From Octopus sinensis (taxonomy: Eukaryota), in NCBI RefSeq assembly GCF_006345805.1, contig NC_043011.1, positions 64,616,464 to 64,680,463 on the forward strand: a stretch of DNA of 64,000 nucleotides, in the 5' to 3' direction. A model generated the notes under the pieces. That model was not told the origin of the DNA and did not search any database. It worked only from the letters and a program-made list of their open reading frames with translations. Both the position numbers and the translations under genes were made by a program. Shown here piece after piece: positions 15,201 through 58,952 of this stretch. The first letter of the stretch is position 1, and every line of letters begins with the position of its first letter.

Positions 15201-15675
15201 CCGTACTAAATGTTGGTTAAGAGATGCCGGCATGCGTTCCTCCCCGACATCTGAAACACGGAGTTTTATCATGGCTACCGAATAATTGTCACATATTACA
15301 AACACACACATATATATATATATAATATGTATCTATTGATATATGTATGCAGGGAAAGATTGTAATAGATGAATAAAGAGCATTCGACGTTATCCACTTC
15401 TAAAAAGATTCAACGCCAGGGAATAAGAAGGCAAATCGAAAACTAGAATACGTGGATATTTCTATTCAAATATAATGCGCAAATGTTCCACTTACTAATA
15501 TTTAATTGCAATGTATTTAAGTAACTCGTTCTTTCCCGATAACACATATAAAAAAAAAATTGTTGCCTTTAATAGACGAGGAAAACATGATACATCAGGT
15601 GAGGTTGTATGTATCTAAAGTGCTTTAAAATTAAAACCTTAACAGTTGCCATTGTGTTTGACACGTATAACAACG

Positions 15676-15715
15676 ATGAAATATGTTCTACTTCTTCTTA
15701 TGATTCACCTGCAAG
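15676..15715 (+). CDS. Paralog 1, coding exon A (signal peptide MKYVLLLLMIHLQ + phase-1 intron) of a small secreted 6-Cys protein
   Basis: AACG-ATG followed by hydrophobic codons and donor CAAG|GTAAGT. Acceptor aacAG sits exactly 30 nt upstream of the ATG. The 30-nt leader (tttgacacg..taacaacg) is homologous to those at 42543 and 55671. Confidence 0.8.
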
Positions 15716-15877
15716 GTAAGTAAAATCCATATCATTTCACTTCATCCCGGAACGAGTTAGTCATCCATGATCACTCAATACGTATATTTGTATAACCGTC
15801 TCTCTCTCTCCTTCTCTTCCCCTCTCTCTCTCTCTCTCTTATATATATATATATATATATATATATATATATATAAC

Positions 15878-16178
15878 ACCATGATCGCCTTGACTGACCA
15901 GGCGGGCGGATGCTGCTCTACATGGCTGATCACCATGCGCTTCGCATTGTTTTATCTTTCAATGACGCCATCCCGCTTGTTTAGCGAGCAGACAAACAGA
16001 AAAAGAGAGTCTGGGAACGTTGTGGCGAAAGAGTACAGGGAGGGATCGCCACCGTTGCCATTCGGACCCACGAGGGAGCTTTATGTGTTCAATGAACTAT
16101 CAACACTACCGGTCTTGGAATCGTAACCGCGATCCTACATCCTCGAGTCCGCTGCCCTAAGAACTGGGCCATTGCGCC
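15878..16178 (-). mobile_element. tRNA-derived SINE in intron A of paralog 1
   Basis: Reverse complement starts ggcgcaatggcccagttcttagggcagcggactcg...gttacgattcc (A/B boxes); (TA)n at the 3' end. Confidence 0.75.
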
Positions 16179-16809
16179 TTCACACTCACACATACCTAAA
16201 ATTTACACGCACACACGCACACATTTATATATATATAAACGTATATATATGTATATACATATAGATAGATAGATAGATAGTTAGATAAATAGATATATAA
16301 TATAGTAAATACATATATGTATATATATATATATGTATATATATACTTTTATATATATATAGTAAAAGGAGGACATTTAAACCTCTTATGAATTTATTAA
16401 TCTAAGATAAAGTCGTTCAATATATCGTATTTTCTAGAGATATTTCTCCCATTAATATATAACATAAAATATTGAAAACTGCCAAGCTGTATTATCTAAT
16501 CAAACAGAATATTCTATATTATAGTAATCGATATCTAATTAATGAAAATGTTGATTAATTGATAACAATTTCTTTCAATTGGGTATATCTGTTTTGCATC
16601 TCGATAATATTGCTGATAATAATAATAATAATAATAATAATAATAATAATAATAATATGTAAATATTAATAGTAATGATGATAGAAATAATAATAATAAT
16701 TCTAATAATAATAATAATAATAATAATAACAATAATAATAATAATAATAATAATAATAATAATAATAATAATAATGATAATAATAATAATGACAATAATA
16801 ATAATTACA

Positions 16810-17070
16810 TGCATTATTTACATCATTTACATTTGACGGATATTTGTTTTCATCTTGTTTGTTGTTAACACAACCAGGTATCTCGAGGAAATGTCGAGCC
16901 TGGGTTCTCATTCCTCAGATATTTTAGGATGTTATTATTATTATTATTATTATTATTATTATTGTTATTAATATTCAGGCCACTGCCCGGAATTGAAATC
17001 GGAATAATGCCTTTAACAGCGAGGGCTACTAACCCCAAGATTTCGAGTTAGATTCCCGGCAGAGCAGTAG
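16810..17070. mobile_element. Second head-to-head tRNA-head/hammerhead-tail element: left arm plus right-arm head (right-arm tail displaced to 22690-22850)
   Basis: 16830-16940 is the reverse complement of the tail with the ribozyme core deleted. 16975-17005 and 17017-17065 are opposed tRNA-like heads (gggctactaaccccaagatttcgagttagattcccggcag). Confidence 0.72.
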
Positions 17071-17224
17071 AATGATAATAATAATAATAATATTAATAAT
17101 AATAATAATAATGATAATAATAATAATAATAATAATAATAATAATAATAATAATAATAATGATAATAATATTAATAAAATATCAATAATAATGATAATAA
17201 TAATAATAAAAAAAGAGAGAAGAA

Positions 17225-55700: not shown

Positions 55701-55734
55701 ATGAAATATTGTTTATGTATTCTTCTCTTTGTTC
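55701..55734 (+). CDS. Paralog 3, coding exon A (MKYCLCILLFV, signal peptide)
   Basis: AACG-ATG, hydrophobic codons and donor TTC|GTAAGT; phase 1. The homologous upstream acceptor position reads AA rather than AG. Confidence 0.82.
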
Positions 55735-56662
55735 GTAAGTAACGTGAAATGTCATTCATAAATTATTTTATGCACAATATATGATTCCGTTCTCTTCTTT
55801 CTCTCCATATAAGTGTGTAATTATATATAATTATAAATATATATGTGTTTGTATGTGTTATTGTGTGTGGGAGTATGTCTGTGCATGTATATGTGTGTGT
55901 GTGTATGTGTGTATTTGTGTGGTTGGGCGAGTGTGTATATTTGTATATCACAAATACTATCGTCATCTCCGCCTAAGCGAAGACGGAGTTGTCTTGGCGG
56001 GATTTGCGCTCTCTAAGTGCTTTTGTTCATATTTTAATGAATAATCTGGGAAGAGAAGTTATAAAAGTTGTCATTTATTTCTTCTTTTTCTTTTGTAGAT
56101 CATAAACTTTTCGGTCTCTCTTTGCTAGTTTTTTTTTTTGTATAATGAAAAAATGCAATTTTCAAACTAATATTGTGGCACTAAAAAAATTGCAAATTCA
56201 ACCCAAAACGAACTTTAAATAGAATCATCCTTCAAAGTTATAACCCTAGGCGAATGTATGGCTATGTTTTCAAAAAACTTCCTCTTCATTAACATGGTGG
56301 AAGATTGGGAAACACTACGTCGTATCGTGGTTCAGTTCCCTCTATTACATCAAGAGACCGATGAATAAAATTGGAGATAGTGGAAAATGAAACAAACCTA
56401 TTTTACACATATGTATCTGTGTGCCTTTCCCATAGTACAGATTCAGCGACCAGCTTACATATTGTCTGCTGGTTCATTGGAAGCACCATAATTTAGTGTT
56501 TCTGAAATATAGATACATCACATGAGTGCCATGTAGGAATGTATTTGTTGTGCTATACCCACAAAGCCAATACCAAAGTAACGACGATTCTCCAATGAGT
56601 GAAATAAATACAACGATAAAAAATATGTCCATAGAATAAATTATAACATCTTTAATTTACAG

Positions 56663-56777
56663 ATGTTGCAGTATCAGAATTAAGTGAATATTGCTACGAA
56701 TTGGGAAAGAAATATTGCTATAATGGTATGAGATGGTATCCTATACCAACTCATAAAAACGACACATACTATTGCAA
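56663..56777 (+). CDS. Paralog 3, coding exon B (H-VAVSELSEYCYELGKKYCYNGMRWYPIPTHKNDTYYC)
   Basis: Acceptor ctttaatttacAG and donor CAA|GTATGT. Phase 1 to 2, C-x7-C-x18-C, with an N-D-T sequon. Confidence 0.82.
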
Positions 56778-58254
56778 GTATGTTCGATTCTTTATAAAGA
56801 AAATTTTCACATTTTTAAAAATTGAATTTATAAATATATATATTTATCATGATCGAAAAATGCATTGTAAATAAACAACGAGGGATAAAGGACGTATGCT
56901 ATACTGAGCGTAAAACCAATGGGAGAGAGAAAATTAAGGTCCCTAATTCATCATCAGTTATGAACCAAAACACAGCGAAGTATTCACTCTTATCGTTAAT
57001 GTAGCGAAACTGAGAATTAACGCTTTGGTTGGTAACTGATGACGAATTAGGGGCGCTCTGTTCGTATCCTCCGTCCGGATGTACACTCAGTATAAGTATA
57101 TGTTACTATGCGTCATTTATTTGCAATGCGTTTTTCCATCTATTTAATGACGATGCGCAAAGAAATAACGAGTTTTATTAGAAGTAAGATTATATATATA
57201 TTCATATCTACCTGTTATTTATGTATTTAAGGCAAGGAGCTGGGTGAATCTTTAGCACACTTGGCAAAAAAGCTCATCATTTCGTCCGTCTTCACAATCG
57301 TAGAGCACATTCTGTCGACTGCGACTTTGTCTTTTATCTTCTCTGGGTCAAAATAATAATTACCACCTGAACACTGATGTGGATGTAATCAACTCTCAAT
57401 CAACATATTCCAAACTATTTAATGATCCATTCAATCTTAGATCCACTTTTAGCGATAATTTGTTTACAGAGTTTTAGTCCAGACTGTTGAAACCAAAAGA
57501 AGCCAGGCAAGGATTTTGTTTACGACAACAAATTTTCACCTCACCTGTATTCGAATACAGCAATTAGCGGGTAGGAACATTTAACCAGATTAAAAATTAC
57601 AGACCTGCAAATTCTTCTGTAAACATATCGATGTAATATAAATAATAGCTTAATGTATTGGCTCAAGGTCAGGAATTCCTATGCTACCAAATCTCACCGA
57701 TTACATTGACGACGGGACATGAACTGAAAGAGCAGATATCATGTTGATCTTCACATCCTTGAACCTCTGAAAGTAGAAAGCCAGACGAAATATTACTATG
57801 CAAATATTTCCAAAGCTCGAATAATCCTACAAGTACATCACCATTAGATAAATATGACAAATATTTCCTCTTACTTGAGGCACGACGCCTAAAGCTGGGG
57901 GGGGGGGCTAATGGATTATATCGACTGAGTGTTCAAATGATAATATACAGTTTAACTCAGGACGAAAAGGCTGCTGAGCATTTTGTCCAGCGTGCAAACA
58001 ATTGTACCAGCACGTGACCTTCAATTTGAAGTTATTGAATTAAAACCATGGGATTGAATAAATAATCCGTAAGTAAACCATGCACAATGATACCAACTAT
58101 ATTAGAATATGTCATATCAAATGTATGACTTCGATATCGTGTTATTAAAAGTAAATAACTGCTATTTTACATTAGATACGTTAAACAATATGCATAGAAT
58201 ATTATTCCATGGCATATATTATAATTTTATTGCCAAATTTATTTTTGCTCTTAG

Positions 58255-58343
58255 TCGAATAAATATGTTCCATAGCTGTTTTAAAGGAAAGTTCGGGGAG
58301 TGTACTAACTTATTCGACAACATATATAACAAGGAAAAATGTG
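58255..58343 (+). CDS. Paralog 3, coding exon C (N-RINMFHSCFKGKFGECTNLFDNIYNKEKC)
   Basis: Acceptor atttttgctcttAG and donor TGTG|GTAAGA. Phase 2 to 1; contained in track ORF 58109-58429. Confidence 0.85.
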
Positions 58344-58857
58344 GTAAGAGATTTTCATTACATATTATAGTATTACAAGAAATAATGTTTCAAAGGATCA
58401 AATACATACAATCGTTATTTTGCACTTAATTTTATTACCTAATATTCCCGTGAACAACTATTTTTATTGAATGGAACTACTATCGGCAATAAAATGGGGT
58501 TTTTTAATGTTATACTTATCAGTTAATAATTCTCGTTCCCTTAAGCATAATTATAATCACTGTCTATATTGCTAGAATGTATGAATATTGTATGTGATTG
58601 TAGGTATTTATAATGTTATGAGCAATAAAATATAAATTTGTTAAATTGAATCAATGGTTAAATAGTAACTTTTGTTAATTTGCAAATCCATAGTAGTTGA
58701 GAATGTACCCAATTGAGGACAGGAAACTTAAAATAATAAATACTTACATTTCTTTCTTTTTACATGACGGTTTTATTAGCAGTTGTTGGAAAGCCCATAA
58801 ATATAAACCAAAAAATAAAACAAAGTAACTGTGCACCGTATTTTCTGTTTATTCTAG

Positions 58858-58952
58858 GTGATGTAATGGCTAAACAGAATGCTCCTCCTTCCTTCCGCCT
58901 TCAGTCAACATGGCTCCTATCGTTGTTTCTAATAATATCGGTATTGCTGTGA
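58858..58952 (+). CDS. Paralog 3, terminal exon D (G-DVMAKQNAPPSFRLQSTWLLSLFLIISVLL*), GPI-signal-like tail
   Basis: Acceptor tttctgtttattctAG. In frame with exons A-C (34+115+89+95 = 333 nt, 110 aa plus stop). Polar spacer followed by 13 terminal hydrophobic residues. Confidence 0.82.

Follow-up and report, generated by a model that had tools for sequence, protein, structure and literature searches.

A fast-evolving tandem array of small six-cysteine protein genes in Octopus sinensis

We analysed a 64,000-nucleotide stretch of the Octopus sinensis genome (C15:64616464-64680463, in an assembly of 2.72 Gb and 13,516 contigs; hereafter the window), which, on the evidence of its reading frames and splice signals, carries two intact genes, w1 and w3, and one dead copy, w2, of a large tandem gene family. 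The family encodes small proteins with six cysteines and has so far been found only in Octopus. All three loci lie on the plus strand. At w3, a promoter-like box and leader (55660..55700) are followed by a 34-nt exon A (55701..55734) encoding the signal peptide, a 115-nt exon B (56663..56777) encoding cysteines 1-3, an 89-nt exon C (58255..58343) encoding cysteines 4-6 and an exon D of 95 nt including the TGA stop (58858..58952). Exon D specifies a polar spacer with N-A-P and then the hydrophobic tail WLLSLFLIISVLL, an arrangement that looks like a signal for a glycosylphosphatidylinositol (GPI) anchor. A poly(A) signal, AATAAA (59004..59009), stands 52 nt after the stop, at an offset equal to that in two paralogues. 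The spliced product of w3 (P0001) begins with a hydrophobic segment, contains six cysteines and finishes in a hydrophobic tail, and it reproduces the 110-residue protein that a first-pass annotation of this DNA had modelled.

At w1, a core promoter-like region and a leader ending in ACAACG (15624..15675), with a TATA-like sequence TTTAAAATTAAAA at 15624-15636 and ACAGTTG at 15642-15648, precede a 40-nt exon A (15676..15715), which specifies the signal peptide MKYVLLLLMIHLQ and is followed by a phase-1 GTAAGT donor. In exon B (100 nt, 22911..23010), which ends in phase 2, lie cysteines 1-3 and the invariant motifs YP and YC; exon C (89 nt, 29543..29631) carries cysteines 4-6 and ends in phase 1. 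These three exons had been recognised in the first-pass annotation, which missed a fourth. We found this exon D (30073..30140) by alignment with two upstream subfamily paralogues, in which the acceptor and the stop are homologous; it adds 22 residues ending in GGK-stop and contains no hydrophobic tail, and the full w1 model (P0004) has 98 residues. No AATAAA occurs within 500 nt downstream of w1. Intron 2 of this gene holds two tandem duplications, at 26593-27294 (351 bp x2, 92% identity) and 28881-29346 (234 bp x2, 98% identity).

The first-pass annotation had described three like loci, and w2 is the one that departs from this description. Its promoter-like region, leader and exon A remnant (42515..42606; exon A at 42573-42606, encoding MKYCRGILHIV) are recognisable, with a signal peptide degraded by the presence of R, G and H. 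No remnant of exon B was found at w2; a candidate at 44603-44653 was rejected as a retrotransposon-derived stretch that adjoins a reverse-transcriptase fragment of a long interspersed nuclear element (LINE). The exon C remnant (about 46077..46166) has lost its AG acceptor, contains a frame-breaking indel and has TAT (Tyr) as its last Cys codon, and the exon D remnant (50112..50206) keeps the acceptor and the homologous TGA and now has charged residues in its tail. Judged by these lesions, w2 is a pseudogene.

The shared features of the loci held up well. The leader 15-mer ACAACGATGAAATAT is present exactly at three sites in the window (15670, 42567 and 55695), one at each locus, and when up to two mismatches were allowed we obtained six matches against 0.5 expected, a number that none of 100 shuffles reached. 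Around these sites, the alignment of the three loci extends about 60 nt upstream and on into the GTAAGT donor. The five splice junctions named in the first-pass annotation are all canonical GT-AG with intron phases 1-2-1, and its exact length of 89 nt for exon C applies to every intact paralogue and to the orthologues in O. bimaculoides. Each unit of the family has a TATA-like box CTCTAATATATTT, followed some 25 nt further on by a CAGTTGG element, and an A at -3 of the ATG; the order of these boxes is common to 10 paralogues, and AATAAA lies 52 nt past the stop in three. With their own TATA-like box and leader and, in several copies, their own AATAAA, the units are separate genes rather than repeated exons of one gene. 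Taken together, these signals argue that the four-exon units are real genes, the product of each consisting of a signal peptide, one six-cysteine domain some 60 residues long and, in most cases, a hydrophobic tail.

An in-frame upstream ATG lies within the conserved leader in about half of the paralogues (w3, and the leaders at window 70683 and 130375). The one in w3, at 55683, would add MTRVTT before the MKY start, and isoform X2 of the O. bimaculoides RefSeq gene LOC128249852 (P0009) starts at the equivalent ATG. Since this upstream ATG is used in LOC128249852 X2 and is present in w3, part of the leader may be coding, and its conservation may partly reflect the coding of the n-region of the signal peptide.

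The introns contain LINE reverse-transcriptase fragments and simple repeats, in agreement with their first description as repeat-filled. Domain matches to RVT_1 / zf-RVT identified LINE fragments in open frames at 21711-22400 (+), 40086-40955 (-), 43397-44005 (-) and 48297-48896 (+), two of which fall inside w2; such fragments occupy the spacers between genes as well as the introns. Scans of the window for tRNA genes and Rfam families gave no matches.

To place these loci in the genome, we used six-frame searches with three paralogues as queries. At least 21 exon-B matches were found on the plus strand of C15 at 64.42-64.96 Mb and about eight on the minus strand at 63.55-63.84 Mb, and an annotated two-domain RefSeq member of O. 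sinensis, LOC115219848, maps to C15:63.05 Mb. The three window loci belong to a far larger array than originally described, with at least 30 exon sets distributed along about 1.9 Mb of a single chromosome. Gene models were built within 264 kb, and members at 63.0-64.55 and 64.82-64.96 Mb were located by search only. The 264 kb yielded seven complete models and one partial model of common architecture, together with further damaged copies. Across these eight models the exon sizes are 34-40, 100-115, 89 and about 95 nt; exons of 34-115 nt are small, but they are not micro-exons, as they had been called, in the usual sense of the term.

Damaged and intact copies are mixed in this region. In the upstream subfamily-1 copies, exon C is partly duplicated or rearranged internally (C15:64563684-64563866 and 64610411-64610500), and in both genes no AG acceptor immediately precedes the second copy of exon C; the two genes are probably damaged. 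Downstream of the window, g64710 (C15:64710988-64711095) has a stop codon within exon B, in g64733 (C15:64733582-64736955) no exon A could be detected and a deletion has removed the stop codon, and such pseudogenes are interspersed among intact family genes. Family exons on four unplaced scaffolds (C9533, C11551, C13508 and C13346) score identically to copies on C15 and are probably uncollapsed haplotigs, so that copy counts taken from the O. sinensis assembly are uncertain. Members with 2 to 9 tandem domains sit on another chromosome than the single-domain array (O. sinensis LOC118763774 on C6; O. bimaculoides LOC128248155 and LOC106874482 on the 117-Mb chromosome).

We then turned to relatives in public databases. 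A profile of six spliced O. sinensis models found P0007-P0009 among public proteins with E-values of 8e-43 to 2e-40 and no matching O. sinensis protein, so the loci are unannotated in this genome; a word-indexed homologue search with P0001 alone gave no matches. When a profile hidden Markov model (HMM) of P0008 and P0009 was run against 1.84 billion representatives, 27 proteins were recovered at E <=1e-3 (range 1e-62 to 3e-4), all of them "uncharacterized" or "hypothetical" proteins of Octopus except for one contaminant contig. They include products of O. bimaculoides LOC128249851/852/853, LOC128249785-789, LOC128249859, LOC128249882/883 and LOC128249887, of O. vulgaris CAI9735826-841 and of O. 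sinensis LOC115219848 and LOC118763774. The earlier view of these genes as hidden therefore applies to the O. sinensis copies here, whereas relatives have been deposited as uncharacterized proteins in O. bimaculoides, in O. vulgaris and elsewhere on the O. sinensis chromosome.

Orthologues in O. bimaculoides lend independent support to the predicted splicing. LOC128249853 (106 residues) is the orthologue of g64771, a gene of equal length with identical residues across each junction, and its exons in the O. bimaculoides genome (37/100/89/95 nt) have the lengths of the g64771 model. Likewise, LOC128249852 corresponds to g64748 and LOC128249851 to the g64793/g64816 pair, and the gene order 852-853-851 in O. 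bimaculoides is that of g748-g771-g793/816 in O. sinensis. Neither w1 nor w3 has a public record, and neither has an annotated O. bimaculoides counterpart that we could find. The RefSeq and UniProt loci of Octopus and the window genes are alike in the six-cysteine domain, the four exons, the signal peptide, the hydrophobic tail, the chromosome and the gene order, and by these shared features the window genes are members of one unnamed Octopus six-cysteine family. No publication on the family or its accession numbers was found in the literature searched, and the family has neither a name nor a Pfam model.

RefSeq gives several isoforms in its models of the O. bimaculoides genes. The model of LOC128249851 skips the homologous tail exon D (CM046618.1; L037:19368-19462) and uses another 3' end, and other loci in this species have X1 and X2 isoforms with differing C-termini (112/92 and 147/115 residues). 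Alternative last exons may thus switch between anchored and soluble forms. In O. vulgaris, the CAI97358xx models (P0007 and P0013) join exons B and C from adjacent family genes and run on into introns, so that the family is mis-annotated in that species. Searches for contigs derived from transcripts of P0008, P0026 and P0027 led back only to the O. bimaculoides genome.

The only hint of the domain beyond Octopus is a 322-bp contig labelled Campylobacter fetus (JAENPT010000070.1, GCA_016612925.1), which contains an intron-less, cDNA-like open reading frame of the family with a signal peptide, one six-cysteine domain and a stop just past C6. No DNA match and no strong protein match to it were found in O. 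sinensis, and the contig is probably a eukaryotic contaminant from a source other than O. sinensis.

The cysteine frame originally proposed, C-x7-C-x16/18-C-x8-C-x7-C-x12-C, recurs in 77 domain instances, with C-x7-C-x16-C-x8-C-x7-C-x11/12-C as the modal form and spacings of 7-16-8-7-12 in w1 and 7-18-8-7-12 in w3. Family proteins carry one to nine copies of the domain (nine in P0010). Across 23 proteins with a mean column identity of 27%, C1-C5 are invariant and C6 is kept in at least 90%; one Pro and one Arg are nearly invariant in the same set, and YP follows C2 and [YF]-C-x-R is found at C3. Within w1, positions 22931-22990 (exon B, the C1-C2 helix) and 29565-29624 (exon C, C4-C5) are 30% identical and both contain C-x7-C, a likeness that may reflect an internal duplication of a helix hairpin or may be due to chance.

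AlphaFold2 modelling of the orthologue P0008, with six sequences in the alignment, gave a mean predicted local distance difference test (pLDDT) score of 77.8, rising to 81-90 over the domain, and placed helices at residues 18-34, 44-55 and 60-72. The six-cysteine domain is thus predicted to consist of three helices. Foldseek searches of PDB with the models of P0008 and P0007, the latter poor outside domain 1, returned no match below E = 2. No significant PDB match to the family was found by sequence profile, phmmer searches of PDB with P0022 and P0012 gave nothing relevant, and no Pfam-A model reached threshold on the window proteins, all of which agrees with the initial failure to assign a named family. 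A PDB match to the ectodomain of the calcitonin-receptor-like receptor was rejected as cysteine-driven noise, as its E-value of about 0.06 fell away to about 1 with a larger profile.

The topology of the proteins had been described as secreted or GPI-type. Intact members have an N-terminal hydrophobic signal, and most single-domain members end on a hydrophobic stretch of 12-15 residues with nothing after it and a polar spacer before it; a small-residue [N/S/D]-A-x site precedes most of these stretches. We judged GPI features by inspection, looking for a signal peptide and, at the C-terminus, for a small residue at the omega site, 8-10 polar spacer residues and a closing hydrophobic run of 12-15 residues, and saw them in w3, in five downstream paralogues and in two orthologues. 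They are absent in w1, which is among the members without a tail (w1, P0017, P0019, P0023 and P0028). It is probable from these features that the family is GPI-anchored, so that the original description stands for most members, with w1 as the exception within the window.

Next, we compared exons and introns. Between paralogues, exons are no better kept than introns, and in recent pairs they are worse kept. In g64793/g64816, the Jukes-Cantor (JC) distance is 0.093 for exon B vs 0.012-0.052 for the introns, and when w1 is compared with its relatives upstream, identity is about 70% in exon C and 85-93% over the 300 intronic nt immediately before it, fixed-length flank identities of this kind being noisy from indels and of qualitative use only. 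The ratio of nonsynonymous to synonymous substitution rates (dN/dS) over the domain was 0.24-1.6 in pairwise comparisons of paralogues where dS was unsaturated. Between orthologues, g64771 and LOC128249853 gave 0.57 (0.38 over the domain) at a dS of 0.22 and intron distances of about 0.11-0.25, and g64793/g64816 and LOC128249851 gave 0.94-1.05, with dN, dS and intron distance all at about 0.17-0.2. At the same time, splice sites, the length of exon C, the signal peptide and the promoter boxes persist among diverged copies. The neutral survival of a single Cys codon is about 0.38 at a paralogue distance of about 0.4; as six cysteines are kept in many copies, selection would be required to maintain them. 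The overall pattern fits strong constraint on the scaffold with unconstrained or diversifying change elsewhere, and the earlier claim of fast evolution on a fixed scaffold is upheld, with fixed cysteines, orthologue dN/dS of 0.57-1.05 and exon divergence similar to that of introns.

Taken together, we favour the explanation, with a probability of about 0.6, that the window belongs to a fast-evolving, Octopus-restricted array of real six-cysteine genes, whose products would be GPI-anchored and would serve in binding. The array grows and decays by duplication and pseudogenisation. Fixed in it are the cysteines along with a handful of aromatic, Pro and Arg positions, as well as the splice sites and the signal peptide, while the other positions change at a near-neutral rate. 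The six cysteines would form three disulfides, and the tail would act as a GPI attachment signal, leaving a mature protein that is a helical knob of 60-70 residues on the outer membrane leaflet. Copies that lack a tail, w1 among them, and alternative isoforms like those of O. bimaculoides would be released as soluble proteins. The domain itself would be a diversified extracellular binding module, acting as a co-receptor, a decoy or a recognition tag.

Several observations weigh against this explanation. As it has neither a tail nor a canonical poly(A) signal close by, w1 may be undergoing decay; in the w3 promoter, the stretch between the TATA-like box and CAATTGG (55660-55674) is shorter by about 12 nt than in all other paralogues; and an exact look-up of the six spliced models in the public protein collection found none on record. 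Pro occupies the presumed omega+2 position in several members, which is unfavourable for GPI anchoring. Relaxed constraint likewise gives dN/dS near 1, and no test gave a dN/dS significantly above 1. The binding function is proposed by analogy only, with the BMP/GDF-binding N-terminal domain of repulsive guidance molecules (RGM), which the family may weakly resemble, and the comparison has clear limits. The Pfam model RGM_N (PF06535; gathering cut-off 24.2 bits) has no match on P0001 and P0004 and reaches 15 bits on P0005 and 13 bits on P0002, all sub-threshold. The family HMM scores 14.2 bits on the RGM N domain of octopus over C3-C5 only, a score reached by 7 of 2000 cysteine-fixed shuffles; the outer cysteine spacings differ (7-16-8-7-11/12 in the family vs 4-22-8-7-22 in octopus RGM); and the Foldseek searches of PDB with two models retrieved no RGM structure.

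The same comparison bears on an alternative that places the family, as a genuine if divergent branch, within the RGM N-terminal or the GDNF-receptor/GAS1 superfamily, its members acting as membrane-anchored co-receptors or decoys for cystine-knot ligands of the TGF-beta superfamily. In RGM, the N-terminal domain forms a bundle of three helices with three disulfides and binds BMP2/GDF5 (PMC7354924). This domain of RGMA/B/C (4UHZ, 4UI0), which belongs to GPI-anchored proteins, and that of the family are alike in being small and having six cysteines; the three helices predicted for the family and its probable GPI anchor would extend the likeness. They have in common a central C-x8-C-x7-C, identical in octopus RGM, and a D-x-x-[FY]-C-x-x-L-[KR] motif. 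RGM_N scores above its cut-off in two multi-domain relatives (P0012, 37.9 bits; P0022, 29.1 bits) and matches weakly in 8 of the 23 single-domain members, and the RGMB N-domain appeared in the PDB profile search at E of about 0.5, over C3-C5. However, the above-cut-off scores are sums of repeated partial matches, the 14.2-bit score on octopus RGM is only about 3 standard deviations above the cysteine-fixed shuffles, and the likeness beyond cysteine placement is weak. Moreover, the window proteins have neither the vWD-like C-terminal domain nor the GDPH autocleavage site, and end about 30 residues past the domain, whereas a genuine O. sinensis RGM, with GDPH, is encoded at C2:164242613. We therefore treat RGM_N as a tentative lead and not as evidence of membership.

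For the GDNF/GAS1 side of this alternative, the starting point is the UniRef name of P0015, "GDNF/GAS1 domain-containing protein". This name was not reproduced by Pfam-A: the GDNF model (PF02351) had no match at E <=10 in about 40 family proteins scanned, P0015 included, and Foldseek with the two models returned no GFR-alpha structure from PDB. The GDNF-receptor alpha / GAS1 domain (IPR016017) is a cysteine-rich, all-helical extracellular module of GPI-anchored co-receptors, and GFR-alpha domains are larger, with about 10 cysteines. Overall, we regard descent from either superfamily as unlikely.

A comparably improbable alternative takes the proteins for soluble effectors that are secreted, for instance as components of saliva or venom, as antimicrobial peptides or as water-borne pheromones; the tail would then be a removable propeptide or sorting signal, and divergence would reflect an arms race or mate recognition. 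The genes of conotoxins, of the phospholipase A2 (PLA2) and three-finger toxins of snake venom and of defensins keep the signal, introns and untranslated regions conserved around a hypervariable mature region and turn over by birth and death. The octopus array, with its tandem birth-and-death and a mature region that diverges as quickly as the introns or more quickly, resembles them, a conserved signal peptide, introns and untranslated regions around a hypervariable, cysteine-framed region being a classic signature of toxins, defensins and pheromones; the five tail-less members would also fit. On the other hand, a polar spacer and small residues ahead of a terminal hydrophobic stretch are what GPI signals typically show and are unusual in a soluble effector, and members with as many as nine repeats are unlike peptide toxins; the GPI-type tail and the multi-domain members both point to membrane proteins. 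The gene organisation also recalls the Ly6/uPAR family, proteins of about 100 residues with a signal peptide and a GPI signal, tandem clusters, rapid divergence and both soluble and anchored members. Ly6/uPAR proteins have a beta-strand three-finger fold with 8-10 cysteines, whereas the model of the octopus family is all-helical with six cysteines and has no match to Pfam UPAR_LY6.

The view that the array is largely non-functional, a set of neutral, decaying duplicates of an older gene whose models are relics, can draw on the dN/dS near 1 in one orthologue pair, on exons that diverge like introns, on the clear pseudogenes w2, g64710 and g64733, the two rearranged upstream copies and the state of w1, and on the absence of the genes from the O. 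sinensis annotation, but it is the least likely of all, as the seven complete models and one partial model keep their frames, six cysteines, splice sites, 89-nt exon C, signal peptide and promoter boxes intact at paralogue distances of about 0.3-0.5 substitutions per site, one-to-one orthologues of identical exon structure are retained in O. sinensis and O. bimaculoides, the RefSeq models of the latter include several isoforms, and the g64771 domain has a dN/dS of 0.38.

The favoured explanation, of a real, Octopus-restricted array with GPI-anchored products, could be extended much further. In this extension, a repertoire of at least 30 genes over about 2 Mb would encode GPI-anchored three-helix binding modules derived from an ancient RGM-N-type domain, with positive selection on the helix surfaces and alternative last exons that toggle soluble and anchored forms, and would make up a surface recognition or co-receptor code. 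Such a code, if true, could serve in neuronal identity, in chemotactile or self/non-self recognition or in the modulation of expanded cystine-knot ligands. We consider this extension a long shot.

A small number of very large, lineage-specific expansions are a known feature of octopus genomes, and the family described here would join them as an undescribed one, of a domain without a Pfam model or structural match and mostly on one chromosome. Its kind is familiar, that of tandem, fast-evolving families of small cysteine-framed surface or secreted proteins; for the domain itself, no family model, structural match or literature was found. Because the O. sinensis copies are mostly unannotated and neighbouring copies in O. 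vulgaris are mis-fused, comparative and single-cell studies cannot at present see these genes. If the array is not expressed, it would be a clean example of birth-and-death decay. If its products are GPI-anchored binding modules, they would be candidates for cell recognition or ligand modulation in animals whose surface-receptor repertoire is widely of interest.

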